Shown: piece by piece, positions 1-17,127 of the stretch | How the letters are laid out: every line of letters begins with the position of its first letter | Numbering within the stretch: position 1 is the stretch's first letter | From: Macrostomum lignano | Lineage: Eukaryota | Assembly: GCA_002269645.1 (NCBI GenBank) | Contig: NIVC01001321.1 | Coordinates: 1-26,945, forward strand | Reading direction: 5' to 3' | Length of the DNA stretch: 26,945 nucleotides | Notes under the pieces: generated by a model | Told to the model about the DNA's origin: nothing | Seen by the model: the letters and a program-made list of their open reading frames with translations, nothing else | Database searches by the model: none | Translations under genes and position numbers: made by a program

Positions 1-1
1 T

Positions 2-1648
2 TCAAAAGAGTTCAGTGACCTACACGGTTTTGAGTTCGCTGACGCCGCCCATTCGAACCATTCTGTGATAAATCATGAGAATCTAAAACTTATGCTCAAA
101 AGAATTTCCGAGCTTTATCAGGAACGCAGTTGCCGAAATTTTAGAAACGAAGTCTCTTTTAGTAAAGTCTCACGAAGCCTCTTCCGAACTAAACTGTGTG
201 ATGCAATCGCTTGAGAAAAGTGTGACTGTGTGCTTCAACGGACTGTAACAAGTCATGAGCAAAAGATCTCTGAGTTGGAAGAATTGACATCTTTGCAACA
301 AGGACAGATTTCAGAGTTTCGGTCTATACGAAGTGTTAACGAAAAAGTAATTTCTCAGCTTCAGGATGTAAATTCTTCCCTGTCAACTGATATTGGCGAA
401 TGCCGTCAGTCATTGCAAAATGCGATAGAAATTAAAGATCAGTTAGAACGCAAGGTAAGTAAGCTTCAGGATGAATGCAGTATTGCCACTCGAAAATATG
501 AAGAGTTGGTAGACACCAAACGCTTTCTTGAGGGAGAGCTACTAGCTGTTAAGAACTCTCAAGTATTGAGTGAAGAAAAACTAAATTTTGCCTCAAAGAC
601 GAATGAGGATCTTTCACATCAATTAAATAAAGCACTGAAGAAAGAGAACAACGTTACCATGAAATTTTGAACTGAAGAAGCAGAGCGAGGAGTATAACCG
701 TGATATAATTGAACTTCGCAATTCAAAAGCTGAGGCTGATAAAAAGTTGAAGAGTTACAAAGCATCGTTGTAGCTCAAAGAAAAGCTGCGTCTGAACTGC
801 AAGACACTAATTTCAAGCTAGAAAAGTCTGTTTCTGACTACGAAGAAATTTTGTATTCGCATGAGACTAACATTTTGTTGCTTCAGAAGACCAGCTTTTT
901 GCAGGAAGACTCGATCGCCAAGCTCAAAGAGTTGAATTCCGCACTGCGCAAGTCTATTGTGGAACTACAGGATGCTAACTCAAATATGGAAAAGCGGATA
1001 ATTGAGTTAGAAGAGGAAGAGCAGAGGATGCATTCGGAAATCGGATCATATCTGGAAAGAATATCCGAACTAGAATCGCAGGTCAGTGAAGAACAAATTA
1101 GCAGAGTGAATCAATTGCAAACTGCTAATACACAACTCACAGACGAGCTAAGCAAGCTAAAGGAAGAAAGGATGCATCTGAACCAAACTGTTGCTGATCT
1201 GGAATCAGAAAAGCTTAAACAACAGCAGGAAATAGAAGTGCGAGATGCGCAACTAATCCAACTCGAAGGTAATGCTGCGCATTATAAGGATGACCTCACA
1301 AAAGTATCGGACGAATTGGTCGAAGCGATGGCGTCAAAAGAGGAACTCGTAAAGGAAATCAGTACAATCGTACTCGCTAAGCAAGATTTTGAAACTCAGG
1401 TCTCTAAGCTGACACAGGAAAACTCAAATTTAGATGAGCAGAATAAAAAGCTTATTGTGGAACTGGAGCAGTCAGCAGAAGGATTTCGTTCTGCAAAGCA
1501 GGAGTTTGAGCGGTCAGTAAATGCATTAAAGTACGAATTAGAAACTCTGGAGAAATCAAACAGTTATCTGGATGGCCAGCTCCGGCAGTCCTCTGACAAG
1601 GCGTCAAATTTGGAATCCGAACTGCTATTGTTAGACAAGACCTATCAG
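2..1648 (+). CDS. Coding exon A (5'-truncated by window edge, frameshifted) of giant coiled-coil golgin-like gene
   Basis: ORFs 230-670 and 851-1663 are in the same frame and both are E/K/L/Q/S-rich coiled coil. They are bridged by a shifted frame at 669-770 (ELKKQSEEYNRDIIELRNSKAEADKKLKSY). Further frame switches occur near 125 and 230. The exon ends at CAG|GTACAA (donor 1649). Confidence 0.7.
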
Positions 1649-1840
1649 GTACAAGAATTATAATTTTGTATTTTTTCATACAGTTAATAAAAGCTTAAAT
1701 TATCACTTGCCTATCGTATAAAAAATTAAAAACAACAGAAAAATTTAGACTACGTACAGTACTCTCTCTTATTCATCGTTTTGCATTAAGTTAAATTACT
1801 GTCACTTGTCGTAACATAAGAATTTTTCTCTTCTTTTTAG
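1649..1840 (+). other. Intron 1 (192 nt, phase 0)
   Basis: GTACAA donor, AT-rich body with in-frame stops, acceptor tttttctcttctttttag|GAT GCG AAA restores the frame of ORF 1850-4123. Confidence 0.85.
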
Positions 1841-4081
1841 GATGCGAAAGTGGACCTATGTGTACAGCTCCAAAGAGCAAAAGAGGAACTACAGCAAACG
1901 CAAATAGAAAATGTGGACCTTCAAACCCGAGAAAGTGCTTCACTTGACAGTGTCAGCACTCTAACTAAAGAGCGTGACGACCTAGCCACTGAGTGCAATC
2001 TCGTAGCCTCAGAAGCTGCCCAGTTAAAAGAAGCCAACTCAGACTTAAATAACAGGCTTGAGGAGGTCTGCGCCGAGCGAGATCGCATGAAAGAAAAGTG
2101 CGCTCGACTTGTGAAGCAGTGCCGCATTTTGAAGGAAGCGTCCAAGCAGAGCCAACAACGAGCAGAGACTGCGGACATTTGCTGTCAGACTGACGAAACC
2201 ACTGAGTCAGAGGCTGCAGCTGGTACAGCATCTGCATCAGTATCAGATGCTGCAACTGAAACAGATGTAGTCATCTCTTCTGAGTCTTCATTTGAACCAG
2301 GAAGGTTGATGGTAGATGCTTGTACTGATGCAGAGCCATGTGAACTTGAAAGTCGAGTGTCTGAGCAAGATGTTGAGCAGTTATTATCGTCGAAGATGTC
2401 ACTGACTGAGGAAGTATTCAAGTTGAAGCAGCAGCTCGCAGCTTTGGAGTCATCGAAGCAAGCTGCGGATTCAGAGCTTGACAAAGCGATGACTGTCATG
2501 TCAGCTCACGAAAAGCTCGTTTCAGAACACGAAGTGTTAATATCGGAGCGGGATTCATTGATGTCGGAACGCGACGCATTGGTCACGGAGCGCGAAGCCA
2601 TTCTCTTCGATCGTGAAAATTTTTCATCAGAGCGGGATGCCTTGATAACAGAAAAGGAAGCTTTGGTGCTAGAGCGGAACACCTTGATAAGAGAACGGGA
2701 GACTTTGATATCAGAACGTGACTCCATGGCTACAGAGCGCGAGGCACTAGCCTCAGAGAACGCTCAGCTGATGGAATTCGCCACCCAGTTGAAGGAGAAG
2801 CATGACTCTGTCTGCACCGAGCGAGATCGCATGAAAGAAAAGTGCGCTCGACTCGTGAAACAGTGCCGCATTTTGAAGGAAGCATCCAAGCAGAGTCACC
2901 AGCAAACAGAAACTGCGGACATGTGCTGCCAGACTGAAGCCGCCACCGAGTCAGTGGCTGCAGCTGGTACATCATCTGCATCAGTATCAGACGCCGCAAC
3001 TGAAACAGTTATGATAATCTCTTCAGAGTCGTCATTTGAACCAGAAAGGATGATGGTAGATGCTTGTACTGATGCAGAGCCATGTGAACTTGAAAGTCGA
3101 GTGTCAGAGCAAGAGGTTGAGCATTTATTATTGTCCAAGATGTCTCTGACTGAGGAAGTCTTCGATTTAAAGCAGCAGCTTGCAGCTTTGGAGACATCAA
3201 AGCAAACTGCGGATTCAGAGCTTGAGAGAGCAATTAGTCTAATGTCCGAGCGGGACAGTTTAGCATCACAGTGCGATTCTGTAATATTGGAGCGCGACGC
3301 ACTAATTTCCGGACGTGAACGCCTGATCGCTGATCTTGAAAGCCTAGTATCCTCTCGTGATGCTCTGGTATTAGAGCGTGACTCTCTGGTAACAGAACGC
3401 GATACTCTAGTATCAGGACGTGCTTCCCTGGTAACAGAACTTGACTCTGTAACAACAGAGCGCGAAACACTAGCCTCAGAAAACGCCCAAATAATGGAAT
3501 CCGCCGCCCAGTTAAGGGAAAAGCATGACTCAGTGTGCACAGAGCGAGATCGGATGAAAGAAAAGTGCGCTCGACTCGTTAAACAGTGTCGCAATCTGAA
3601 GGAGGCTTCAAAGCAGAGTCAGCATCGAGCAGAGACCGCAGAATTCAGCTCTCAGACTGAACCGGACACCGTGTCTTTGGCTGCCGCGGGCGCTGTACTG
3701 ACATCTGATGGTGGACCAATGCCTTCAGTGACTCAAGTAAATGTATCCACAGAAACCGATCTACTGTTGCAGCCAGAAAGACCGTTGGTAGATGTTGCCG
3801 CTGATGACGAATGGACTGGTGCTCTTACTAAAAGTTCAAAGCGCGAGTTAGAGAGCTTGTTAGCATCAAAGATTTCCCTAGGAGAGGAGGTATCTGACTT
3901 GAAGAATCAACTCACCGAATCCGAGGCTGCTAGAAAGCTTGCAGAGTCTCAGCTGAAGAAATCATTGCAAAAACTACAAATAGTTGAGAATCTAGCGCAG
4001 CATGTGTCAAGTGGAGAGACACAGATTGAAGAGTTTCCGGAGTTGGAGACTGTGGTCAGCTCAGTTCGTGTCGCCCTACTT
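1841..4081 (+). CDS. Exon B of giant golgin-like gene (repeat units 1-3)
   Basis: Open frame, coiled-coil repeats, ends CTT|GTAAGT at 4082. Confidence 0.9.
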
Positions 4082-6650
4082 GTAAGTACTTCTTCCAAGT
4101 TTTGTACTCGTATATATTTTTAGCGATATTTCGGTTTTTATTTTATTGTTTTCTTCTCAATTTTTTAGAACACTCATTCCTCTAGGAGTCTTCAACAGTC
4201 AGAAATAGAACAGCTGCAATCAACGTTAAAAGGCTTGGAAAATATCCGGGACTCATTAACCAGCGAGCGCGACGCCTTGGCATCAGAACTACAAGCAATG
4301 GCGTCGCAACTTGAAGACATCGCAACTGAACGTGATTCGCTGAAGATGGATCGCAGCCTATTATCTTCTGAACGGGACACCTTGGCGTCAGAAAAAGTTC
4401 AGCTGATGGAATCTACCTCTCAAATAAAGGAGCAGCATGACGCGGTCTGCGCCGAGCGAGATCGCATGAAAGAAAAGTGCGCTCGACTCGTGAAACAGTG
4501 CCGCATTTTGAAGGAAGCATCCAAGCAGAGTCAACAACGCGCGGAGACTGCGGACATGTGCTGTCAGACTGAGACGACCACCGAATCAGTGGCTGCAGCT
4601 GGTACAGCATCTGCATCAGTATCAGATGCTAAAAATAAAACGAATATGATTATCTCTTCTGAGTCGTCATTCGAACCAGAAAGGATGATGGTAGACGCGT
4701 GTACTGATGCAGAGCCAAGTGGACTTGAAAGCCGAGTATCCGAGCAAGAGGTCGAACAGTTATTATCATCCAAGATGTCACTCACTGAGGAAGTATTCAA
4801 GTTGAAGCAGCAGCTCGCAGCTTTGGAGTCATCGAAGCAAGCTGCGGATTCAGAGCTTGACAAAGCGATGACTGTCATGTCAGCTCACGATAAGCTTGTT
4901 TCAGAACACGAAGTGTTACTATCGCAGCGTGATTCGTTGGTGTCGGAACGTGATGCATTGGTCACTGAGCGCGAAGCCATGCTCTCGGATTATGGAAATT
5001 TATCATCAGAGCGGGACGCCTTGATTAAAGAACGGGAGACTTTGGTATCAGAACGGAACGACTTTGCGTCAGAGCGTGACTCCATGGCTACAGAGCGCGA
5101 GGCATTAGCCTCAGAGAACGCTCAGCTGATGGAATCCGCCACCCAGTTGAAGGAGAAGCATGACTCAGTGTGCACCGAGCGAGATCGCATGAAAGAAAAG
5201 TGCGCTCGACTCGTGAAACAGTGCCGCATTTTGAAGGAAGCATCCAAGCAGAGTCAACAACGCGCGGAGACTGCAGACATTTGCTGTCAGACTGAGACGA
5301 CCACCGAATCAGTGGCTGCAGCTGGTACAGCATCAGCATCAGTATCAGATGCTAAAAATAAAACGAATATGATTATCTCTTCTGAGTCGTCATTCGAACC
5401 AGAAAGGATGATGGTAGACGCGTGTACTGATGCAGAGCCAAGTGGACTTGAAGGTCGAGTGTCCGAGCAAGAGATTGAGCAGTTATTATCATCCAAGGTG
5501 TCACTGACTGAGGAAGTCTTCGAGTTGAAACAGCAGCTCGCAGCTTTGGAGTCATCGAAGCAAGCTGTGGATTCAGAGCTCGACAAAGCAATGACTGTCA
5601 TGTCAGCTCATGAAAATCTCGTTTCAGACCGAGACAATTTACTGTCTGAACGGGAGAAGCTTGTCTCAATGTACAATAGTTTACTGTTAGAGCGTGACAC
5701 GTTGATTAAAGAGCGCTCAGCTACGATCTCTGAGCTTGAAAACCTAGTATTAGAACGAAACGCTCTGGTTTCGGAACGTGACACGCTTGCGTTAGAGCGG
5801 AATACTTTAGCTTCAGAGAACGCTGCTCTGATGGAATCTGCCACCCAGTTGAAGGAAAAGCATGACGCAGTCTGTACTGAGCAAGATCGCATGAAAGAAA
5901 AGTGCGCTCGACTTGTGAAGCAGTGCCGCATTTTGAAGGAAGCATCCAAGCAGAGTCATCAGCGAGCAGAGACTGCGGACATTGGCTGTCAGATTGAAAC
6001 AGCCACTGAGTCAGTAACTGCAGCTAGTGCGACAGCTACATCAGATGCTGCAACTGAAACAGATGTCATCTCTTCCGACTCTTTATTCGAACCAGTAAGG
6101 GTGATGGTTGATGCTAGTACTGATGTGGAATTCAATGAAGTTCACAGTCGAGTGTCCGAACAAGAAGTTGAGCAGTTATTGTTCTCTAAGATGGCACTGA
6201 CTGAAGAAGTATTCGAGTTAAAACAACAACTCGCAGCTTCAGAAGCATCCAGAGAAGCGACAGATTCTGAACTTGCTAAAGTAAAGGTTCTAAACTCAGA
6301 TCGAGAGGATTCAGTTTTAGATCGAGACACTTTGGTATTAGAGCGAGATTCGTTGTTAACCCAACGGGACAGCATACTTTTAGAGCGAGACACTTTGATT
6401 GCAGAGCGAGAGTCAATGCTTTCCGATCGGGAAAATTTAGTCGCAGAGCGGGACGCTTTAGCCTCTGAGAACGCTGCTCTAATGGAATCTTCTACCCAGT
6501 TGAAAGTGACGCATGAGGAAGTCAGCACCGAGCGAGATCGCATGAAAGAAAAATTTGCCCGGCTTGTAAAACAGTGCCGAATTCTGAAAGAGGCAGCCAG
6601 GCAGAGTCAGCAGCGAGCAGAGACTGCGGAATGCAGCTGTCAGACCGAAC
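2063..6650 (+). repeat. Coding macro-repeat: 7 copies of a ~650-745 bp unit containing nested 21-bp heptad repeats
   Basis: The anchor gagcgagatcgcatgaaagaaaa (ERDRMKEK, minor variants) starts at 2075, 2819, 3542, 4454, 5177, 5879 and 6530. Spacings are 744, 723, 912 (includes intron 2), 723, 702 and 651 nt. Confidence 0.95.
4082..4168 (+). other. Intron 2 (87 nt, phase 0)
   Basis: GTAAGT donor, T-rich body, acceptor ttttttag|AAC ACT CAT in frame with ORF 4235-7471. The alternative AG at 4185 is out of frame. Confidence 0.85.
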
Positions 6651-6940
6651 CAGAAAGGGAGTCAGCGACTCTATCTGACGCAAACACCGCTTCAAATGCT
6701 AGGCCGGACGTTTCAGTTGCCGATGCATCAACAGAAACGGTTGCACTTTTACCTCCCGAGGCTTCATTCGAAAAAGAGAACCCGACAATTTCTGAGTCTC
6801 AGACCGTTGAAGTTTTCTATCGCGCTTTTGACGATGCTATTAGAGCTGCTGGACTTTCATACCGCGAAGTGAGTCTCCCATCTCCGCCCTCGTTGTTGTC
6901 AATGTCCGAGCTTTCAGAATGGATTACTAACCTTGTTAGC
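4169..6940 (+). CDS. Exon C of giant golgin-like gene (repeat units 4-7)
   Basis: Open frame, same repeat family as exon B, ends AGC|GTAAGT at 6941. Confidence 0.9.
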
Positions 6941-7030
6941 GTAAGTTTCAATGAGTTTTCATTTTTTGTACTGAAATTTCTTCACTTAATACTGCAATTT
7001 TATGAAATTTTTGTCATTATTCTAATACAG
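6941..7030 (+). other. Intron 3 (90 nt, phase 0, no in-frame stop)
   Basis: GTAAGT donor, T-rich body, ctaatacag|TGC acceptor. The ORF track reads through it as an atypical hydrophobic stretch. Confidence 0.8.
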
Positions 7031-7450
7031 TGCGTGGCCAGTCAGCATCAACAGTTGGTAAATACTGGCGAGCGCTGCGAAGGCTTGGAGCAGACTATCG
7101 CCGAGAAAGAGGAGTCCCTAACTGAGATGATGGAGCGCCTTGAGATAGCCAACAAGCGAGCGATTACCACAGGCTCCGCCAGTTGGATTTCCAGCCGTCC
7201 TGCCACCTCGGTTGCCAGCCGTCAAGTTGAATGCGACCTTACTCAGCCGCTTATTGATGAGCTGGAGGCGACGCTGGCTAAACGCGACGGCAAAATTGCC
7301 GCTATGGAGCGGGACAGTCGCGAACTCAACCGGAAGCTGGAGTCCCATCTGCAAACTATGCGTCGAATGGAAGCTCGACTCCAGGCTTCGAGTCGAATGC
7401 TGCGCACTAGGCTGGTTGATAGCGCCGAGGCTGAGCAACTGGCGGTTGAG
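7031..7450 (+). CDS. Exon D of giant golgin-like gene
   Basis: Coiled-coil sequence (LEQTIAEKEESLTEMMERLE...). Probable donor GAG|GTTGGT at 7451, with an in-frame stop 18 nt later. Confidence 0.8.
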
Positions 7451-8419
7451 GTTGGTGCAGTGCTTTTGTAGGGGTTTGTAAAAACGGTGCTCACCTAACA
7501 CTAGAAAAATTTCGGAAAGCTTGGAAAAACTGCTATAGCAGCATTCCAACGAAGCTCTCTACGTTCGTACATTGTAAAAGAGGATGTCAACTTTTGCGGC
7601 GAAGTAAAGCTCTGGACCCAACCAACTACATTTTTTATAACTTTTCGGATCAATTAACAACTTGTAAAGAAACGCCAAGGCATCTCATCTGGTTCGCTCC
7701 TTTGTGCTCCCAGGGTTTGTTGGTCCAGAGCTTTACTTTCGACTCCATTCGGGTGCTCAAGTTGACATCAACTATCTGTTTATTGACGTTTGTAATTGAT
7801 ACGTCGTAGAAACGTCACAAATCTATTAATTGGGGGATTTAGCTTAGTGGTTAGAGCGTCGGACTCACGACTTAAAGGTCGGGGGTTCGATTCCCGATCT
7901 CACTGGAACAATTTGTGCTCTTGAGCAAGACGCTTAACTCTGCATTGCTTCAGTTCACCCAGCTGTAAAATGGGTGCCAGCATTAGCTGGGGTAATTGAG
8001 GCTGTGTGGCGACCCCCCCCCCCCAGTCCTTGGGCTGAACAGCCGTACGCAGCCTTCAGATGCGCCGCACAATAGCTGCGGCTGAGCTGTCGGTTGTATA
8101 TCTTCCCAATCGGGGTAGGTGTAATCAGTTATTATTATTATTATTATTATTATCATCATCATTATTATCATTATCATCATCGTCATGATTATCATTATCA
8201 TTAATAAATGATAGAACCGCTTACTGCTTACTGTTTTACGATATGAAAGATCCAGTTTGTTAAATTTCTAATTAATGAAGTTAAGCAGTGCTTTTACATT
8301 CTGAAAGTTCTAGTTTCTGAAGCGATCTCACCCCAATGCCATCCAGCTGTCTTTAGCTCTTTCTTAACCTTATTATACACAATAAATCATATTGAAAAGG
8401 CCTCTTCAATCAATTCCAG
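7451..8419 (+). other. Intron 4 (969 nt, phase 0) containing a SINE
   Basis: GTTGGT donor and caattccag|GTG acceptor join AEQLAVE to VESLFAQLDAAEEE in frame. The donor is weak, so the exact 5' boundary is less certain. Confidence 0.7.
7832..8202 (+). mobile_element. tRNA-derived SINE with CORE-like central domain and (ATT/ATC)n tail
   Basis: A box TAGCTTAGTGG (7840-7850) and B box GGTTCGATTCC (7884-7894). The segment cttgagcaagacgcttaactctgcattgcttcagttcacccagctgtaaaatggg (about 7920-7974) resembles the MIR/CORE consensus. Trinucleotide tail at 8129-8202. Confidence 0.8.
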
Positions 8420-11400
8420 GTGGAGTCTTTGTTCGCGCAGCTCGACGCAGCCGAAGAAGAGGTTGGCCAGCTGCGCTTGACCCTGCGGGACCGGGACAAT
8501 GAGCTGCTCCGGCTAGCCGACCAGCTGCGCGTCGAATCCGAGGCCAAGCGGCTCGACCTGTCAACTATGCGCGAGCAGTCCCGTCTGTACGAGGCGGAGG
8601 TGCGTCGCCTACGTTTTGAATTGGACGCCAAAGAGGAAATGCTGACGCTGACTCGCGAGGCCGCCACCACCGCCACCCCCGCAGCCGCCGCGTCCACTTC
8701 GTCGGGTTGCGGCAGAGAGGACACGGCGGGGGATGGGGAGCTGGACAATAGTGCCGCATTTTATAAGCGCCGTACGGACGAACTCACTGTTGAACTCAAC
8801 AATGCTAGAAATTCTATTCAGCGGCTGACTGGCGAGTTAAAGGAAAATTCTATTGCGGCTGAAGCTGCCGTTGAAAAACTGCGCGCCGAGCTGTCGGTCA
8901 CCGTTGAAAGCAAAGAGTTACTAAACAGAGAATTAATTGAAGCCAAAACTGCTTGCGACAGTTTGACTATTGAAATAGCCGAAGCCAAAGAAGATGGAAG
9001 CATTATAGAAAAGCTTAACTCAGAATTGGCAACGGCCTCAGATGACAAAGAGTTGTTGAACAAAGAGCTGTTTGAAGCTAAAGCTACAATTGACAATCTG
9101 ACGGCTGAATTAGCTAAAACAAAGACTGAAATCGAGCTTGTGGGTGATTCTAATTCAAAACTGACCAATGCCATCAGAGACAAAGAGTTACTAAGCGAAG
9201 AATTGAGTAAAGCTAAAGCTACAATTGACAATTTGACCGCTGAATTGGCTAAAACAAAGACTGAACTCGAGCTTGTGGGTGATTCTAATTCAAAACTGAC
9301 CAATGCCATCAGAGACAAAGAGTTACTAAGCGAAGAATTGAGTAAAGCTAAAGCTACAAATGACAATTTGACTGCTGAATTGGCTAAAACAAAGACTGAA
9401 CTCGAGCTTGTGGGTGATTCTAATTCAAAACTGACCAATGCCATCAGAGACAAAGAGTTACTAAGCGAAGAATTGAGTAAAGCTAAAGCTACAATTGACA
9501 ATTTGACTGCTGAATTGGCTAAAACAAAGACCAAAGTGGACGGCGATGCTAGTGAAGCGCTGGGCAATTTAAACTCTGAATTGACGGTCGCTTTAGAAGA
9601 AAAAGAAAAAGAACTAAGCGAGACAAAAGTTCTAATAGACAATTTGACGGCCGAATTGACCAAAGCCAAAGAAGACATGGTTATTGAATCTACAGAAACT
9701 AGAAGCATCATTGAACAACTTGCAAAGGACAAGGAAAATTTAAATCAACAACTAACTGCGGCTAACAATGGAATTGACAGTTTAAACATCGAATTTGTCA
9801 GGACTAAGGAGGATTTGAATAATAGACTGGCTGAAGCTGAATGCACGATCGATAATCTGCGCTCTGAGCTGGCCAGTGCGGCTACCGCTAATGATAATTT
9901 ATGCAACGAATTGGCAGAAGCTAAAATATTAATCGATGAGCTGAGAAATGAGCAAAAAGAAGTTGAAAAACCTACTTTGGCTACTGTAAGTTGCGCCAGC
10001 CAGACTGAAGCGGTCCCGGAAGCTGCAGGTCTCGAACAGCAGCGACTGTATGGCGCTGGTCAGGACACCGCCGATGGTGAAAGCGAAGCCAGTCTGCGCA
10101 GTCGTTTGGCTGAGAAAGAGCGCCTGGAGCAGCGCTACGCCGCTCTGGTAAAGAAGCTCCGACAGCAGCGACAGGAGACACTGCAGCAGCACCGTAATCA
10201 GCTGGCTGAAGTTCAGTCAGCAGCCGCTGCTGAGGTGGACGAGCTGCGTCGACGATTGGAAGCCAGCGAAGCTGAGCTCGATTCGGCACGGATGTCCCTG
10301 GCTTTAGCACCGCCACCGCCGCCACCTCCGCCGCCTCCGCCTCAGCAGCAGGCAGCCGAATCGGAGCTGCAGTCTCTGCGTGCTGTGCACTCGCGATGCC
10401 AAGGACAGCTGGACCAGGTTCGAGCCGAGCGCAATCGAATTCAACAGGAGTTCGACAGGCTGCGGCGGCGGCTAGAAGAGAGGCCTTTGTCGTCAACTCC
10501 GCCACCACCGCCTTCGCAGCCGATCGAGCGCTTACAGCAGTCTTCATCTCCGACGCCGTCACCGCCGCCCCTGCATGCTCCAACAGCTGAAGCATCGGCG
10601 GTTGATGCCGCTGCGGCTGCAGCAGCCGAGGATGAAGTTCTAACACTGCGCTCCGAGAACGAAGGCTTGCGCTTTAAAGTGAGCGTGCTAGAGACCAAAG
10701 CCAAGAAGATGGAGTTCCGACTTAGGGCTGAACGCGACAAGATTGACAAGCTGCAGCTGCGGCTCGACGAGAAAGACGTGGAACTGGACCAGCTGGTTGA
10801 CAAGCTTCGCGCCAGCCGGGGCCAGCTCGAATCTGAGCGCAGTCGACACCTCAACGAAGCCAAACGGCTCAGCGCAGCGCTTGAGGCTGAAGAGGCTCGG
10901 GCCGGCAAGCTCGAGCGTCGACTACGCGACGGCAGCTCCGAGTCGGCGACGGCCGCCCTCGCCGAGGAGGCGGCTGCGGCTCGCGAAGCAAAACGCCAAT
11001 CGGAGCAGCGCCTGCTAGCGGAGGCGGCCGATCTGCGCGGCCAGCTGGACGAACTGGCGGCTGACAATCGCGATTTGCGCAGCCGACTTGAAGCGGCCGC
11101 CCCGTCTGGCTCTGGCGCCTCCGCCGGGGTCAGCGCGAGCGACTGTGCCGAGTGTAGGCGTCTGCGCGAGGCTGTCCGAGTGCTGGAGCTTCAACAGGCC
11201 TCGAGACGTAGCAGGCAGCCAACTTGCGAGACCAAGTCTGTTGGCACCGAGGCGGTGTCAGTTGATGAGGCTGCCTGTCAGACATTGGAACCTGACGAAG
11301 AGAATGATGCAATGCAGCGGCGATTAAACGAGCTAGAGTTGGCGGCTGTGGAGTGCGAGTCGCTTCGGGCTCTGGTGAAGCAGATGGAGGAGTCTGCGGC

Positions 11401-11716
11401 GCCTTGTGCTCCAACGCCGACACCGCAGCCGCTGCGACCGTCGCCGTCGCCGCCACCTCCAGACTCGGAGGACACTTTGTCGGCGTCTCAATCAGCTTTG
11501 GACGAGTCATCAGTGCTGATTCCAATGCTGATGGACGAGCAGCAGGCCCTCGCGGGCTTACAATCGACAACAACACCAACGATGGCGTTGGTTCGACGAC
11601 TTCGTCGATGCCTTCAACCGTGGCGATCGTTGAGGCTTCGGCCGAGCGCGCGCAACGCCGTCATCGCATATTTGTTTGGCCTGCACTGCCTGTTGCTGTA
11701 CTGGTTGCTGCTCTGA
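8420..11716 (+). CDS. Terminal exon E: coiled coil with Pro-rich hinges and C-terminal transmembrane tail anchor (giantin/golgin-84/CASP-like)
   Basis: 1098-codon ORF ending LRLRPSARNAVIAYLFGLHCLLLYWLLL-stop. The Tyr (11669) and His (11684) are spaced Y-x4-H, as in the TMDs of tail-anchored golgins (recalled: golgin-84 IYMALLH, giantin IYFLMIH, CASP FYTLFLH). Confidence 0.85.
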   Translation: MESLFAQLDAAEEEVGQLRLTLRDRDNELLRLADQLRVESEAKRLDLSTMREQSRLYEAEVRRLRFELDAKEEMLTLTREAATTATPAAAASTSSGCGREDTAGDGELDNSAAFYKRRTDELTVELNNARNSIQRLTGELKENSIAAEAAVEKLRAELSVTVESKELLNRELIEAKTACDSLTIEIAEAKEDGSIIEKLNSELATASDDKELLNKELFEAKATIDNLTAELAKTKTEIELVGDSNSKLTNAIRDKELLSEELSKAKATIDNLTAELAKTKTELELVGDSNSKLTNAIRDKELLSEELSKAKATNDNLTAELAKTKTELELVGDSNSKLTNAIRDKELLSEELSKAKATIDNLTAELAKTKTKVDGDASEALGNLNSELTVALEEKEKELSETKVLIDNLTAELTKAKEDMVIESTETRSIIEQLAKDKENLNQQLTAANNGIDSLNIEFVRTKEDLNNRLAEAECTIDNLRSELASAATANDNLCNELAEAKILIDELRNEQKEVEKPTLATVSCASQTEAVPEAAGLEQQRLYGAGQDTADGESEASLRSRLAEKERLEQRYAALVKKLRQQRQETLQQHRNQLAEVQSAAAAEVDELRRRLEASEAELDSARMSLALAPPPPPPPPPPPQQQAAESELQSLRAVHSRCQGQLDQVRAERNRIQQEFDRLRRRLEERPLSSTPPPPPSQPIERLQQSSSPTPSPPPLHAPTAEASAVDAAAAAAAEDEVLTLRSENEGLRFKVSVLETKAKKMEFRLRAERDKIDKLQLRLDEKDVELDQLVDKLRASRGQLESERSRHLNEAKRLSAALEAEEARAGKLERRLRDGSSESATAALAEEAAAAREAKRQSEQRLLAEAADLRGQLDELAADNRDLRSRLEAAAPSGSGASAGVSASDCAECRRLREAVRVLELQQASRRSRQPTCETKSVGTEAVSVDEAACQTLEPDEENDAMQRRLNELELAAVECESLRALVKQMEESAAPCAPTPTPQPLRPSPSPPPPDSEDTLSASQSALDESSVLIPMLMDEQQALAGLQSTTTPTMALVRRLRRCLQPWRSLRLRPSARNAVIAYLFGLHCLLLYWLLL
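9077..9531 (+). repeat. Near-perfect 135-bp (45-aa) coding tandem repeat, ~3.4 copies
   Basis: gctaaagctacaa begins at 9077, 9212, 9347 and 9482. Unit AKATIDNLTAELAKTKTELELVGDSNSKLTNAIRDKELLSEELSK. Degenerate copies flank it. Confidence 0.95.
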
Positions 11717-13276: not shown

Positions 13277-16093
13277 ATGCACCATCTAGCTCACTGCGAC
13301 CACAGTGCATCGCAGGCTAGCCGACCTATGTCGCCGAGCACGCAGTTGAAGTTTCTGCTGGCCTGGGGCCAGGGACGCAACTCCCAAGAAAGCCCGTCCC
13401 CGCTCAGCAGTGGTCATAGGCTCCGCTCGAAGCTGTCAAACAACGCTCAGCTGGACGGATCGGCTTCTTCAAATCCTAGGCCGAGTGGTCGACGAAGGCG
13501 GTCACTGACCTATGTTCCGGTGTCCGCCTGGGTCAAAGACTTCAAGGATGAAGACGAGATCGACGGGTGCAGCATGAGGACGGCAGGAAGCCGCAGATCA
13601 CCGAGTACCGGAAGATTTTCAGCCGCGTCAAGGAGCGCCTCCATTGGTGACCGGATAACATCAGTTTCGTCCAGGCAGTCGGTTGCCATGCCGCATGAGC
13701 CGACGGAGTCGCCGGCGCCTCCGCTTCCGCCGCCTCGAGCGTCACGCGCGTCGCGGCCGGCTGAACGGAGTCCGCCACCGCCGCTTCCGCCCCGACGGGC
13801 ACCCCGGCCGGCTCCTCGGAAAACTCTACCACCGCTGCCGCCTCGGAAAAAGCTGCCACCGCCGCCGCCACCGGAGCAGTTGCTTTCGCCCCCGATGCCG
13901 TCTCAGACTCCGCCACCGACGCCACCTCCAAAGACTCTGACACCGCCACCGCCGGCGCGCGTTGCGTCTTCTTCTGCTAAAGCCTCTGTTGCAGCTGTTG
14001 CTGTCACCAGCCAACGCCACCGCACGAATCGCCATTCTTCAACACTATCTCAGGCTGAGCTACGGGAGGTTCTGGCTCGCAGTGCAAGTCGCGCTGAAGC
14101 CTATCAGTCCATCGCAGATGCAGCTCCATCTGCCGGTGCCTCGATAGCAGAGTGCTCTAGAAAACGCCGCGAGCTTCGGCGGCCGTCAGACGTAGCAACT
14201 CTACTACACGAGATACTCGCTGGTAGAGCAAGCCGCTTAGGTGCCGGGGAAACTTTAGAAGTCGCCTCGCCAGCCGCGGGCGCGGCTAGCGCTAAAACAA
14301 ATAAATCAACTCACGGCTCTGGGGCTGGTCGAGCTCTTAAAAATGAGGACGATTTAAACAAGCAACGAAAAAAGTGGTACAAGAAGTCGACAAAGTCGCG
14401 CAGCTACTCCTCTGAATCGAACATAGTGGACACGCTGGCGGAGATCATTGCTGAGAAGATCAGTCGCGCCGATAGGCGCAGGCAGAAGTATGACAGCAAA
14501 GGTGACGAACGCCTTAAGTTTGCAGCATCTTCGTCCAATCATCACAAAGACAAGCCAGATTGCGTTCCTGGGACCGAAAGAAAAGTTGTTAAAGTTAAAC
14601 GGCATAGTAAGCGAACCAGCACTGCCACAGATAGTTCGCTTAGTAGGCAGCAGCAAAACTGCAACAACTGCTATGAAAAGCCACCAAGAAGAAAAACAAG
14701 GCAGTTCTGTCACACTCACGTTGTGAATATTCAGTCAGCTAATGGTGTTCACAGTCGAAGTGGCGATGGTTGGAATTTTGCGTCCAAATATGGAAGCCAA
14801 GAACTTTTCCGTAAATGTGGGCTTTCAAATAGATCGAATGCAGGAAACTACAGACCATGTGATCAGCTCTTCTTTGATGGCAGTTTTGAGCAAGCGCAGA
14901 TTCGTGCAACTGCAACGCCAGTATCTGAGCGCAGCCTGTCTGAGCGATTCAGCGTTGAACGAATTCAAGGCGAGTTAGTCTATCAAAATGTCGATAATAT
15001 CGGCACTAGCACTTGTTCAACAGATGAGGAAATTAGCAGCGAACAACGTCCAACCAATGTGTCTCAGCTGAGCACGCAAGCGTTGTATCATCACCGGTTC
15101 AGCGGTGCTGAAATCTCTTCGTTCTCGCGTTCAAGCGATTCATCGCAACGGTCAATGTCAGAAGCTCAAGCGAACTCGCACTTAGCTCCAACTGGTTGCC
15201 AGCATTCTAAGGCTGTCACAGAGCGGTTGTCCCGGCGTGAAAACTCGGATTTCGAATCTCAAGCTGCTGCAGCCGCGGCGGCTGCGGCGGCCTATGCGGA
15301 AGATTTATTCAGCGGCGTGGTTAACGGACGCGATGAGTCCAATCTTCTGCTTCCGTTGGATGAGGCACCTCACGAGTTAAGGCTAAATTGGGTGTTGGCA
15401 GACACTGGGGACGAGTTGGGAGGAGGCGACTGTGTTGACATAGAAGCAACGATTCACATCCTTGAGCCGGAGACTGCATTGCCAAGGACCAATAGACGTG
15501 AACGGAGCCCGGTGTTTTGCGCCAGTCAGACTTGCAATTGGAGTTCCGATCTGCCGAACAACTGTCGAAGTGACGTTGCTGCTGATACATTGCAGCATTC
15601 TCAAACGCGCAGCTCAATATCGTCCGATGCGTTGCAGGAAAAATTTCGCTTACCGTCAACATTGCATGGTCAGCAGCAAAATGTCTCAGACTGGCTAACC
15701 ACTGGTTGCGAAGGTTTCAATCGAGTAGCGAAAAGCGTTAATAAAAAGCGGACTACACTGCATCGACGTAGTCGAGTTCAAATTGTGGAGCCTCTTGCTG
15801 ACGCTGTGCAGCATAAGATTGAGCTTCCCAGTTGTATTTTTGAGCAAATTTTCTGTTCTTGGAGACCATTAAAACATGCGCAACTGTTTAGACAAAGCTT
15901 GGCATTCGTCAGTCTAGAGAAAATGCTGCCCGACTCAGCGAGTGAATCTGCAAGTCTCTTGACTCATTTTGGCGGATTGCTGATCAGGGCAGACAATCGA
16001 ATCCCAGCCGAGCCAGAGAGAAAATCAGCACTAATAGAGCTATCGCATTTCGATTTGCCAGATGCATCAGCTCCCGCATTGTCAAGAGATTAA
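13277..16093 (+). CDS. Intronless 938-aa low-complexity protein with Pro-rich SH3-ligand cluster and basic NLS-like segments; function unknown
   Basis: 2.8-kb ORF with ATG in aaaacATG context. It contains PPLPPPR, PPLPPRR and PPLPPRKK, a basic stretch KQRKKWYKK and a poly-Ala tract. No recognisable folded domain. Confidence 0.75.
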   Translation: MHHLAHCDHSASQASRPMSPSTQLKFLLAWGQGRNSQESPSPLSSGHRLRSKLSNNAQLDGSASSNPRPSGRRRRSLTYVPVSAWVKDFKDEDEIDGCSMRTAGSRRSPSTGRFSAASRSASIGDRITSVSSRQSVAMPHEPTESPAPPLPPPRASRASRPAERSPPPPLPPRRAPRPAPRKTLPPLPPRKKLPPPPPPEQLLSPPMPSQTPPPTPPPKTLTPPPPARVASSSAKASVAAVAVTSQRHRTNRHSSTLSQAELREVLARSASRAEAYQSIADAAPSAGASIAECSRKRRELRRPSDVATLLHEILAGRASRLGAGETLEVASPAAGAASAKTNKSTHGSGAGRALKNEDDLNKQRKKWYKKSTKSRSYSSESNIVDTLAEIIAEKISRADRRRQKYDSKGDERLKFAASSSNHHKDKPDCVPGTERKVVKVKRHSKRTSTATDSSLSRQQQNCNNCYEKPPRRKTRQFCHTHVVNIQSANGVHSRSGDGWNFASKYGSQELFRKCGLSNRSNAGNYRPCDQLFFDGSFEQAQIRATATPVSERSLSERFSVERIQGELVYQNVDNIGTSTCSTDEEISSEQRPTNVSQLSTQALYHHRFSGAEISSFSRSSDSSQRSMSEAQANSHLAPTGCQHSKAVTERLSRRENSDFESQAAAAAAAAAAYAEDLFSGVVNGRDESNLLLPLDEAPHELRLNWVLADTGDELGGGDCVDIEATIHILEPETALPRTNRRERSPVFCASQTCNWSSDLPNNCRSDVAADTLQHSQTRSSISSDALQEKFRLPSTLHGQQQNVSDWLTTGCEGFNRVAKSVNKKRTTLHRRSRVQIVEPLADAVQHKIELPSCIFEQIFCSWRPLKHAQLFRQSLAFVSLEKMLPDSASESASLLTHFGGLLIRADNRIPAEPERKSALIELSHFDLPDASAPALSRD

Positions 16094-16155
16094 TAGTAAG
16101 CTGCTGCCTACTGGGTTCGACTCTTGAACTGGCAGGTGGACATCTGAATCTATCT

Positions 16156-17127
16156 ATGCTGAATACCACGCAGCACCCAGAAGCAGCAATCGTCAGGTCA
16201 AGCCTCTGTTTGCATCAGCGATGCGGCAACAGACAGAAATTGTTTAATTCGGGCGTCGAGCAGACCTGGCCGCCCTGTTGCTTCTACAGGACCGAGTCCT
16301 GTCGAGGCTCAACAGCCCGTCGAGGCCGAAGCAATGAGCTTCTTGAGAAGCTGCAAGTAGCTTCCAATCTGGCTATACAAAGCCGGCGACAGAGCGATCG
16401 ATTCAGCAATGACTTAGATGAACAAGCAATAGAATTCAATAACTGTGACGTCACTCCTCTGACATCTATCGGTGCAACTGATTGTGCAAAGTGTCTAAAA
16501 CCAATCGAAGCATCGCTGACCGAGAAATGTAAACGATTATCCTCAAAGTACTGCAGCTTACAATGCGTCATCACACACTGTCCAGAGCTGGTCACCAATC
16601 TAAACTTGCACCTGGCCTCCGATACCGAAGCCTCGAAGAAAGATTCGAAAACGCTGCAGCGTGAGCCACCGCAACAGCCGTACTTCTCAAATCAGGAAAC
16701 GGCATCGAGTGAGAGCAGCAGCACCGATACCAGCTTGCGCACCCTCGGCAACCAGTTCAATCAGGTGAGCGATACGTGCAGAAAGCTGCTACTGTCCCAG
16801 GCGGCTGGCGACAAGCTGGCATCATCTAGCGCGGATCAGCTGCTTTCTCTCCAGTCCATCCAGACTGCAGACTCGGATCCGCGGGTCGAACAGGCTAACG
16901 AAGGCGTAAGAAGCTCGCCGCTCGATGCCCGATCCTGCAGCTCTCGAAGTTGCCCGTCTAGCAGCAATGCACGGTGCTTCGGCTCGCCTTATCTGTCGGA
17001 ACTCGAGCAGGAAGTGCCTCCTCTGGTCAGCATCACTTGCCAGCTCAGCTTAGTGGAGCAAACGACTAGCGATGCTGATACCAGTGACAGTTTTGAACAT
17101 TCTTTACCGGCTGGCGACTGCGCATAG
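16156..17127 (+). CDS. 323-aa ORF with FCS/TRASH/MYND-like Cys cluster; possibly the C-terminus of the 13277 gene
   Basis: The frame is open from 15946 and overlaps the end of the upstream ORF. It contains CAKC-x18-YCSLQC-x3-HC at 16483-16581. Confidence 0.55.
   Translation: MLNTTQHPEAAIVRSSLCLHQRCGNRQKLFNSGVEQTWPPCCFYRTESCRGSTARRGRSNELLEKLQVASNLAIQSRRQSDRFSNDLDEQAIEFNNCDVTPLTSIGATDCAKCLKPIEASLTEKCKRLSSKYCSLQCVITHCPELVTNLNLHLASDTEASKKDSKTLQREPPQQPYFSNQETASSESSSTDTSLRTLGNQFNQVSDTCRKLLLSQAAGDKLASSSADQLLSLQSIQTADSDPRVEQANEGVRSSPLDARSCSSRSCPSSSNARCFGSPYLSELEQEVPPLVSITCQLSLVEQTTSDADTSDSFEHSLPAGDCA

Follow-up and report, generated by a model that had tools for sequence, protein, structure and literature searches.

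The DNA analyzed here is the opening 26.9 kb of NIVC01001321.1, a contig in assembly GCA_002269645.1 of Macrostomum lignano. The window, by which we mean this whole stretch of 26,945 nucleotides, matches the contig exactly and has identical coordinates. It contains the 3′ part of one gene encoding a long coiled-coil protein with a predicted tail anchor. The rod of this protein includes seven repeat units, and in each of them a short sequence that we term site 1 resembles the motifs bound by LC8 (DYNLL). The principal features of the gene are as follows.

230-11716, forward strand: 3′ part of one gene, tail-anchored coiled coil (predicted), from the frame-2 translation
up to 1648, 1841-4081, 4169-6940, 7031-7450 and 8420-11716, forward strand: exons; each is in frame 2 and the introns are phase 0
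between about 650 and 800, forward strand: first intron, boundaries approximate
1904-6880, forward strand: seven repeat units of 217-248 amino acids (651-744 nt), from the repeat alignment
11657-11716, forward strand: C-terminal membrane anchor AVIAYLFGLHCLLLYWLLL followed by the stop codon; a hydrophobic 19-mer with no lumenal tail

Gene structure and tail anchor

The long reading frames within 230-11716 all lie in frame 2 of the forward strand, and the stop-bearing gaps between them are short, with GT...AG ends and phase 0. The part of the gene within the window encodes ~3,300 residues that are mostly helical, as judged from the translation and, for the parts modeled, from AlphaFold2. It runs in frame back to the contig start, and the N-terminus lies beyond the start of NIVC01001321.1, so that the whole protein exceeds 3,300 residues. 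Public gene models on the contig cover 2153-3886, 5612-11716 and 13277-16093. The second of these is PAA69455.1 ('hypothetical protein BOX15_Mlig017789g2, partial'), and its junctions match the exon boundaries that we read from the sequence (GT/AG). Every piece shares the same frame, and the introns are phase 0. The models 2153-3886 and 5612-11716 are a single gene that has been split by the public annotation, which leaves 230-2152 and 3887-5611 unmodelled. Since the current models divide it in two, the gene is worth re-annotation.

The hydrophobic 19-mer at the stop codon is, from its sequence, a tail anchor, corresponding to a membrane helix at residues 615-637 in the structure model of the last exon. 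The last exon also contains a 135-nt (45-residue) tandem repeat at 9075-9531, with 3.4 copies of 97% identity. PAA69455.1 lacks two copies of this array, so either the gene model or the assembly mishandles it. A second, near-identical copy of the last exon is found at positions 1-4700 of NIVC01003107.1 (locus L002), but compared with the window its reading frame is shifted in several places. Either this copy is a homeologue in decay or the shifts stem from indel errors in long reads; being near-identical and frameshifted, it is uninformative on the motifs.

Repeat units with a basic block and a disordered linker

Each unit consists in order of about eight xERDxLx heptads, a basic block, site 1, an acidic linker rich in Ser, Thr and Ala, and a helix. 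The following features define this organization.

2075-2173, forward strand: 33-amino acid basic block ERDRMKEKCARLVKQCRILKEASKQSQQRAETA of unit 1, near-invariant in all seven units
2917, 3640, 4552, 5275, 5977 and 6628, forward strand: ends of the block in units 2-7, from the alignment
5294-5452, forward strand: predicted disordered linker of unit 5 (model residues 97-149), from AlphaFold2

An initial annotation of this DNA described repeats with a non-coiled Ser/Thr/Ala-rich linker, and we find the same, in seven units. The linker is ~53 residues long and is predicted to be disordered. In the AlphaFold2 model of unit 5, for which the other six units provided the alignment, there is a helix from residue 2 to 101, a region with a predicted local distance difference test score (pLDDT) below 50 from 97 to 149, and a second helix from 154 to 233. 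The units are old, with a pairwise synonymous divergence (dS) of 0.5-2.0.

Judged by substitution rates, the basic block is by far the most constrained element within each unit, and the most constrained in the gene. The ratio of nonsynonymous to synonymous divergence (dN/dS) is 0.06 for the block (dS 0.60), compared with 0.38 for the seven motif columns, 0.58 for the remaining linker and ~0.28 for the helices. In the block region 26 of 51 columns are invariant. The a/d core of the block is canonical, M-C-L-C-L with Cys at successive a heptad positions, and is unlike the surrounding xERDxLx heptads. The block matched no Pfam family, and a search of the PDB with a block profile gave no significant match.

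The helices are built from 21-nt (7-residue) tandem repeats encoding xERDxLx, for example at 2556-2595, 3356-3444 and 5029-5073, and throughout the units. The best database matches to these heptads are bacterial or protist, such as P0006 with 55% identity over 80 residues, and look like convergence rather than homology. Antisense open reading frames (ORFs) of up to 304 amino acids underlie the gene, for example at 8818-9732 and 2896-3594 on the reverse strand. The simplest view is that they arise from the repeats, whose codon usage is periodic and poor in stops, and that they are not genes.

Candidate LC8-binding motifs

The anchor triplet of an LC8 motif is [T/V/I/S]-Q-[T/V/I/C] at positions −1 to +1, with the Gln at position 0 (Q0). 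Site 1 has the consensus A-[DE]-Φ-x-[CS]-Q-[TI]-[DE] and is present once per unit, immediately following the basic block. The seven sequences, from position −5 to +2, are:

2171-2194, forward strand: site 1 of unit 1, ADICCQTD
2915-2938, forward strand: site 1 of unit 2, ADMCCQTE
3638-3661, forward strand: site 1 of unit 3, AEFSSQTE (compare the verified Bassoon binder AEFSTQTP)
4550-4573, forward strand: site 1 of unit 4, ADMCCQTE
5273-5296, forward strand: site 1 of unit 5, ADICCQTE; Q0 is residue 95 of the model, at a frayed helix end
5975-5998, forward strand: site 1 of unit 6, ADIGCQIE
6626-6649, forward strand: site 1 of unit 7, AECSCQTE

The other strings considered are:

9986-10009, forward strand: VSCASQTE, last exon, in a linker predicted to be disordered; model residue 68 (Q0) is within a segment (56-94) of pLDDT <50
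11264-11287, forward strand: DEAACQTL, in a disordered linker (model residues 472-498); poor flanks, a weak candidate
4007-4030, forward strand: SSGETQIE, close to the end of unit 3, with a TQI anchor; Gly at −3 is unfavorable
2243-2266, forward strand: site 2 of unit 1, SDAATETD, with E at position 0
2987 (SDAATETV), 3719 (MPSVTQVN, unit 3), 4622 and 5345 (SDAKNKTN), 6041 (SDAATETD) and 6719 (ADASTETV), forward strand: strings aligned with site 2
3737, forward strand: VNVSTETD, a second TET string of unit 3, six residues downstream of the aligned MPSVTQVN

Candidate LC8-binding peptides are RAETADICCQTETTTE, TLATVSCASQTEAVPE, RAETAEFSSQTEPDTV and SVSDAATETDVVISSE.

The initial annotation had proposed about 20 LC8-type motifs, with up to three anchors per linker. 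The six sequences for which it gave coordinates all translate in frame 2 as it described (DICCQTD at 2174, DAATETD at 2246, DACTD at 2315, SCASQTE at 9989, KSVGTE at 11234 and EAACQT at 11267), and MPSVTQVN and SSGETQIE can be added to its list. The number is an over-count. Q0 within a [C/S]-Q-[T/I] anchor is found in just nine strings, comprising site 1 of each unit together with VSCASQTE and DEAACQTL; seven of the nine have Cys at −1 and two have Ser, and position +1 is T or I.

Nor do the second and third anchors of each linker hold up. At the aligned position of site 2, unit 3 reads TQV and units 4 and 5 read KNKT; the other four units have TET. The flanks of TET are good. It has E at position 0, which occurs in none of the 79 verified binders used for training LC8Pred; the alternatives reported at this position are N, M, L, S and G. 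Site 2 is thus unlikely to be an LC8 site. Site 3 (ACTD, ASTD or AADD) has no residue able to occupy position 0, and ACTD has poor flanks and scores far below all binders, with both scores negative. The strings lacking Q are TET, A[CS]TD and KSVGTE. As LC8-type motifs these have no precedent, while for site 1 the proposal is supported by its flanks, its predicted location at a boundary of disorder, the CQT anchor of SAO-1 and the TQT of a related protein, each discussed below.

The same considerations apply to the larger proposal, in which ~20 sites, three per linker, form a ladder coupling a membrane-anchored rod to cytoplasmic dynein in the manner of Lava lamp. The three strings of a linker do share the outline D-x-x-[CT]-x-T-[DE] with a spacing of 23-24 residues, TET is well flanked and unit 3 reads TQV at the aligned position. 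Moreover, non-canonical anchors bind in multivalent clients; in KANK1 very atypical anchors can bind where many sites are packed with short linkers. Against this stand the Glu at position 0 of TET and the missing position-0 residue of ACTD. Candidate strings within one linker are 23-32 residues apart and site 1 recurs every 217-248 residues, whereas known cooperative stacks have linkers of 3-17 residues. Given the wide spacing, and the long helices between the sites, a cooperative ladder is not expected. The accepted view of LC8 is of a dimerization hub and not an adaptor linking cargo to dynein. For Lava lamp the binding partners reported are dynein, p150Glued and CLIP-190, not LC8, and we find no homology to it. 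A dynein ladder is accordingly most improbable.

A hydrophobic triplet followed by Ser and Glu (VVISSESS or MIISSESS) lies directly 3′ of site 2, at 2261-2290 in unit 1 (DVVISSESSF). Equivalents are present in units 2, 4, 5 and 6; the patch is not conserved in units 3 and 7. It resembles phospho-regulated SUMO-interaction motifs of the PML type. We also considered TETD and ACTD as caspase sites. We rejected these as weak, since units 2 and 7 have V in place of the D; in addition the P4 and P1′ residues are not known to be preferred by caspases.

Flanking sequence and structural setting of site 1

Motifs were scored using simple log-odds matrices that we rebuilt from the 79 verified binders and 32 anchor-containing non-binders in the training data of LC8Pred (PMC6607443, Table S4). 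They are not the matrices of LC8Pred itself, for which the thresholds are ≥12.9 for the amino-acid score and ≥0.1 for the volume/polarity score. In the published preferences −4 is polar or acidic and −3 is large, with no bulky aromatic at −2, D, E or P at +2, and no internal Pro.

In units 1, 2, 4, 5 and 6 the −4 residue of site 1 is D, the −3 residue is I or M and the +2 residue is D or E, matching these preferences. Flank-only scores for these five units exceed those of 94-100% of non-binders and reach or pass the median of the binders. VSCASQTE has intermediate flanks and scores 12.1 bits with the rebuilt matrix, the highest of any site outside continuous helices. The flanks of DEAACQTL, MPSVTQVN and TISESQTV are poor.

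There is a precedent for the CQT anchor. Caenorhabditis elegans SAO-1 binds DLC-1 via 187-VAT-189 and 199-CQT-201, and in a 2.4 Å crystal structure both segments are β-strands in the DLC-1 groove (PMC9630320). The two-site C-terminal fragment of SAO-1 (182-226) binds DLC-1 with a dissociation constant (Kd) of 0.5 μM, and replacing CQT by AAA weakens the binding (PMC9630320). A search of the PDB with the motif peptide gave nothing significant.

In the model of unit 5, Q0 of site 1 (residue 95) is located at the frayed end of the helix next to the zipper block, where the disorder of the linker begins. The pLDDT is 57 at residues 91-100, and <50 from residue 97. VSCASQTE and DEAACQTL both lie in predicted disordered linkers between helices (pLDDT <50). 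Adjacent coiled coils have been reported to rescue weak LC8 motifs.

Conservation of site 1

An alignment of the seven copies of site 1 reveals a distinct pattern. Positions −3 (I/M/F/M/I/I/C in units 1 to 7) and −2 (C/C/S/C/C/G/S) are both variable, with identities of 0.19 and 0.33 respectively. By contrast −1 is C in six units and S in one (0.71), Q0 is invariant (1.00), +1 is T in six and I in one (0.71), and +2 is D or E in all seven. Past +2 the columns vary again, and −4 is acidic in every unit. Among units with dS as high as 2.0, the linker keeps just three invariant residues, and Q0 is one of them. This separate peak at the anchor fits the tolerance pattern of LC8 motifs.

The Cys residues might be conserved for another reason. 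A Cys-Cys pair beside a basic helix could be a palmitoylation site, pinning the rod periodically to the membrane. Cys is present at −1 in six of the seven units and at −2 in four, next to a Lys/Arg-rich helix of a membrane-anchored protein. Yet unit 3 has Ser-Ser, only one C or S is present in each of the last-exon sites, and the related protein described below has T. Palmitoylation would also leave the invariant Q, the T or I and the acidic +2 unexplained, and we regard it as very improbable.

Relatives and family searches

A single relative was found outside M. lignano. This is P0011, a sequence of 350 residues from the Logan assembly of SRR28338165. It aligns end to end with the last 330 residues of the M. 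lignano protein, with 35% identity overall and 49% in the conserved coil, and it shares the tail anchor. The Tyr, His and Tyr of the anchor helix (Tyr-x4-His...Tyr) are retained (window 11657-11713; P0011 331-350), and the Tyr-x4-His pattern resembles that of the CASP family. In the linker before its membrane anchor P0011 has the canonical sequence ASAETQTE, which scores 16.2 bits; this corresponds to the 71st percentile among binders and exceeds 97% of non-binders. ASAETQTE is followed 32 residues on by STETVAL, and in unit 7 STETVAL follows CQTE by 31 residues. The canonical TQT together with this spacing supports the interpretation of CQT as a local variant of TQT.

Beyond P0011 and the M. 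lignano copies, no homologue was found in protein libraries of 5.8 billion sequences and 1.8 billion representatives. A query of 3.5 units returned only convergent xERDxLx heptad proteins of bacteria and protists and no orthologues, and a query with one linker module gave no match in the protein library. A profile search with the C-terminus found P0011 only, and a full-library HMMER search with the C-terminal 585 residues returned M. lignano copies, P0011 and coiled-coil noise. Pfam searches of all the exons gave sub-threshold coiled-coil noise, with nothing for the rod. For the last 61 residues the only Pfam match was to the membrane helix of CASP_C, at E = 0.064 and 13 bits, where the cut-off is 28, so there is no family-level match to CASP_C or Golgin_A5. 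The protein does have the architecture of a tail-anchored golgin, with a long coiled coil and a single C-terminal membrane helix. Neither the library searches with the rod and linker queries nor the C-terminal HMMER search showed homology to Lava lamp. Homology to the dynein-binding golgins (Lava lamp, golgin-160) was likewise not found in the libraries, the N-terminus lying outside the contig. Checking by eye for W-acidic, LC3-interacting region (LIR) and Spindly-type motifs found none conserved across the units.

Evidence against LC8 binding and alternative readings

A number of observations weigh against LC8 binding at site 1. Using the rebuilt matrix the full 8-mers of the CQT sites score 5.8-9.6 bits, corresponding to the 3rd-10th percentile of binders (leave-one-out median 14.6, 10th percentile 9.6) and close to the median of the anchor-containing non-binders (8.8). 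LC8Pred itself would probably place these sites below threshold. The low scores arise because Cys at −1 is found in none of the 79 training binders; if it is scored as Ser the values become 12.4-13.3, at the 33rd-35th percentile of binders. The flanks of units 3 and 7 are intermediate to mediocre, and those of DEAACQTL are poor, as noted above. AlphaFold2 extends the helix of the monomer through site 1 to residue 101, at low confidence (by DSSP). There is a single foreign homologue, and its TQT is not positionally aligned with any M. lignano site. Site 1 is contiguous with the far more constrained block (dN/dS 0.06 against 0.38), and the conserved SKQSQQRAETA reaches further upstream than LC8 needs.

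Because conservation extends beyond what LC8 requires, another partner might read the whole block together with the motif. The block and ETAD-x-CCQTE would then be a composite element for a partner such as a small GTPase, a motor adaptor or another golgin, or a trigger or registration sequence of the coiled coil, and the likeness to LC8 motifs would be coincidental. This would account for the constraint on the block and for its core, which differs from that of the neighboring heptads. It would also account for the conservation of SKQSQQRAETA without a hydrophobic core up to −5, past the contacts of LC8, and for the rank of the sites among non-binders. However, two variable columns part the block from the anchor peak, and LC8 reads precisely the anchor together with −4 and +2, both acidic here. 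Furthermore xQTE recurs without the block in P0011 and in two further last-exon linkers, and the block itself matches no known family. On balance we consider a composite element somewhat unlikely, although it is the main rival and little less probable than LC8 binding.

The number of motifs carries little weight. In a shuffle test on the whole protein the pattern [DE]..[TSVIC]Q[TVI][DE] was observed 7 times, where 0.28 were expected. The seven matches are all copies of one ancestral site, and when the repeats were collapsed to one unit the counts were 1-3 against 0.14-1.1 expected (P = 0.05-0.25), giving no excess. Since these counts are within chance, the argument for LC8 rests on the retention of the motif and not on its number.

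The loss of the excess is compatible with a further alternative. The linkers might be flexible hinges regulated by phosphorylation, with CK2-type sites and a SUMO-interaction-like patch, having no role in LC8 binding, and the strings would survive by ancestry or composition. In a linker rich in S, T, A, E and D, strings such as TET, xTD and xQT are expected. Units 4 and 5 no longer have site 2 (KNKT), and units 3 and 7 no longer have site 3; the dN/dS of the linker is 0.58, and breaks in the coiled coil are normal in golgins (PMC4707255). Such hinges would not explain why Q0 is among only three invariant linker residues despite saturated dS, with acidic residues at −4 and +2 in all seven units, and the good flanks in five units are not explained by chance. 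We therefore think this alternative unlikely, and more so than a composite element.

All other explanations taken together are very improbable.

A model for the role of site 1

The region is best explained as coding for the rod of a giant golgin-like coiled-coil protein with a tail anchor. One motif in each unit, with one or two more in the last exon, are on sequence criteria credible putative LC8 sites. Our preferred reading, which we hold tentatively, is that site 1 and VSCASQTE are candidate LC8 clamps located at breaks in the coil. The rod is interrupted seven times by acidic, disordered Ser/Thr/Ala-rich linkers, each of which opens with site 1. In this model site 1, and VSCASQTE in the last exon, would each bind one LC8 dimer by β-strand addition, and the two identical grooves of the dimer would accept the same site from two parallel chains. 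The clamp could thereby keep the homodimer in register and stiffen the hinge where the coiled coil stops. There would be ~8-9 widely spaced clamps, not a stacked ladder of ~20, and no link to the dynein motor. The analysis itself shows the structure of the gene, its repeats, the disorder, the conservation of the motif and the compatibility of the flanks, whereas LC8 binding, the parallel dimer, the clamp and the Golgi location are inferred.

A more specific proposal, and a more doubtful one, is that this is a lineage-restricted golgin-like protein with one CQT LC8 site per coil break, in which occupancy switches each hinge between floppy and clamped states and so tunes the reach and stiffness of the tether. 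The assignment to the Golgi, though reasonable for such an architecture, is tentative, because it rests on the coiled coil, the tail anchor and the sub-threshold match to CASP_C; a search for localization data returned none.

If the model is correct, these sites would be a second, independent family of Cys-anchored LC8 motifs, widening the definition of the motif used by predictors. They would also be the first LC8 sites placed one per hinge along a golgin-type rod, suggesting a way to regulate the flexibility of long tethers. If the CQT sites do not bind LC8, the protein is an ordinary interrupted coiled coil with acidic Ser/Thr linkers. The reading as a dynein tether should be dropped in either case.

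Other features of the window

A downstream gene lies on the same strand at 13277-17127, comprising ORFs of 938 and 323 amino acids that are rich in proline runs of the PPLPPR type. It matched no Pfam family, and a copy is present in the same position at the homeologous locus L002. Between 25000 and 26800 there is ~1.8 kb of CT-rich low complexity sequence, with (TC)n and CTCTCTCTCT-type arrays and an extreme strand asymmetry (GC skew −0.60). The long ORFs in this region are artefacts of the repeats. tRNA and Rfam searches of the window gave no matches.

Comparison with known systems

Lava lamp resembles the present protein in being a giant golgin-type rod. It is not known to have a membrane anchor. 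Its reported partners are dynein, p150Glued and CLIP-190, and no array of LC8 motifs has been described (PMC4707255). According to the same review giantin is its closest vertebrate homologue, and giantin, golgin-84 and CASP are the tail-anchored golgins (PMC4707255). These three share with the M. lignano protein a very long interrupted coiled coil and a single C-terminal membrane helix (PMC4707255). They differ in that its rod has no detectable homology to them, and the match to CASP_C is 13 bits where 28 are needed.

The anchor of SAO-1 is the same CQT, which there sits in the LC8 groove as a β-strand. SAO-1 is a GYF-domain protein with its second, VAT, site ~9 residues away. The comparison with it covers the anchor.

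The closest functional parallel suggested by the model is with the dimeric LC8 clients, including myosin Va, Bassoon, GKAP, ASCIZ and KANK1 L2. Like these, the M. lignano protein has candidate 8-residue motifs of the kind bound as β-strands, in or next to a segment predicted to be disordered and beside a helix that would dimerize, with a polar or acidic −4, a large −3, Q0, and D or E at +2. It has several putative sites per chain, and the expected role is that of a clamp or stiffener. It is unlike them in having Cys (or Ser) at −1, and in that single putative sites are 217-248 residues apart with long helices between. Cooperative stacking of the type associated with ASCIZ, KANK1 and Nup159, the last also a multi-site LC8 client, is not expected here. 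A periodic arrangement of one clamp per hinge would differ from that of known LC8 clients, whose sites cluster. Confirmation would add the protein to the dimeric, multi-site clients of LC8, among which a layout of one clamp for each hinge is unusual.

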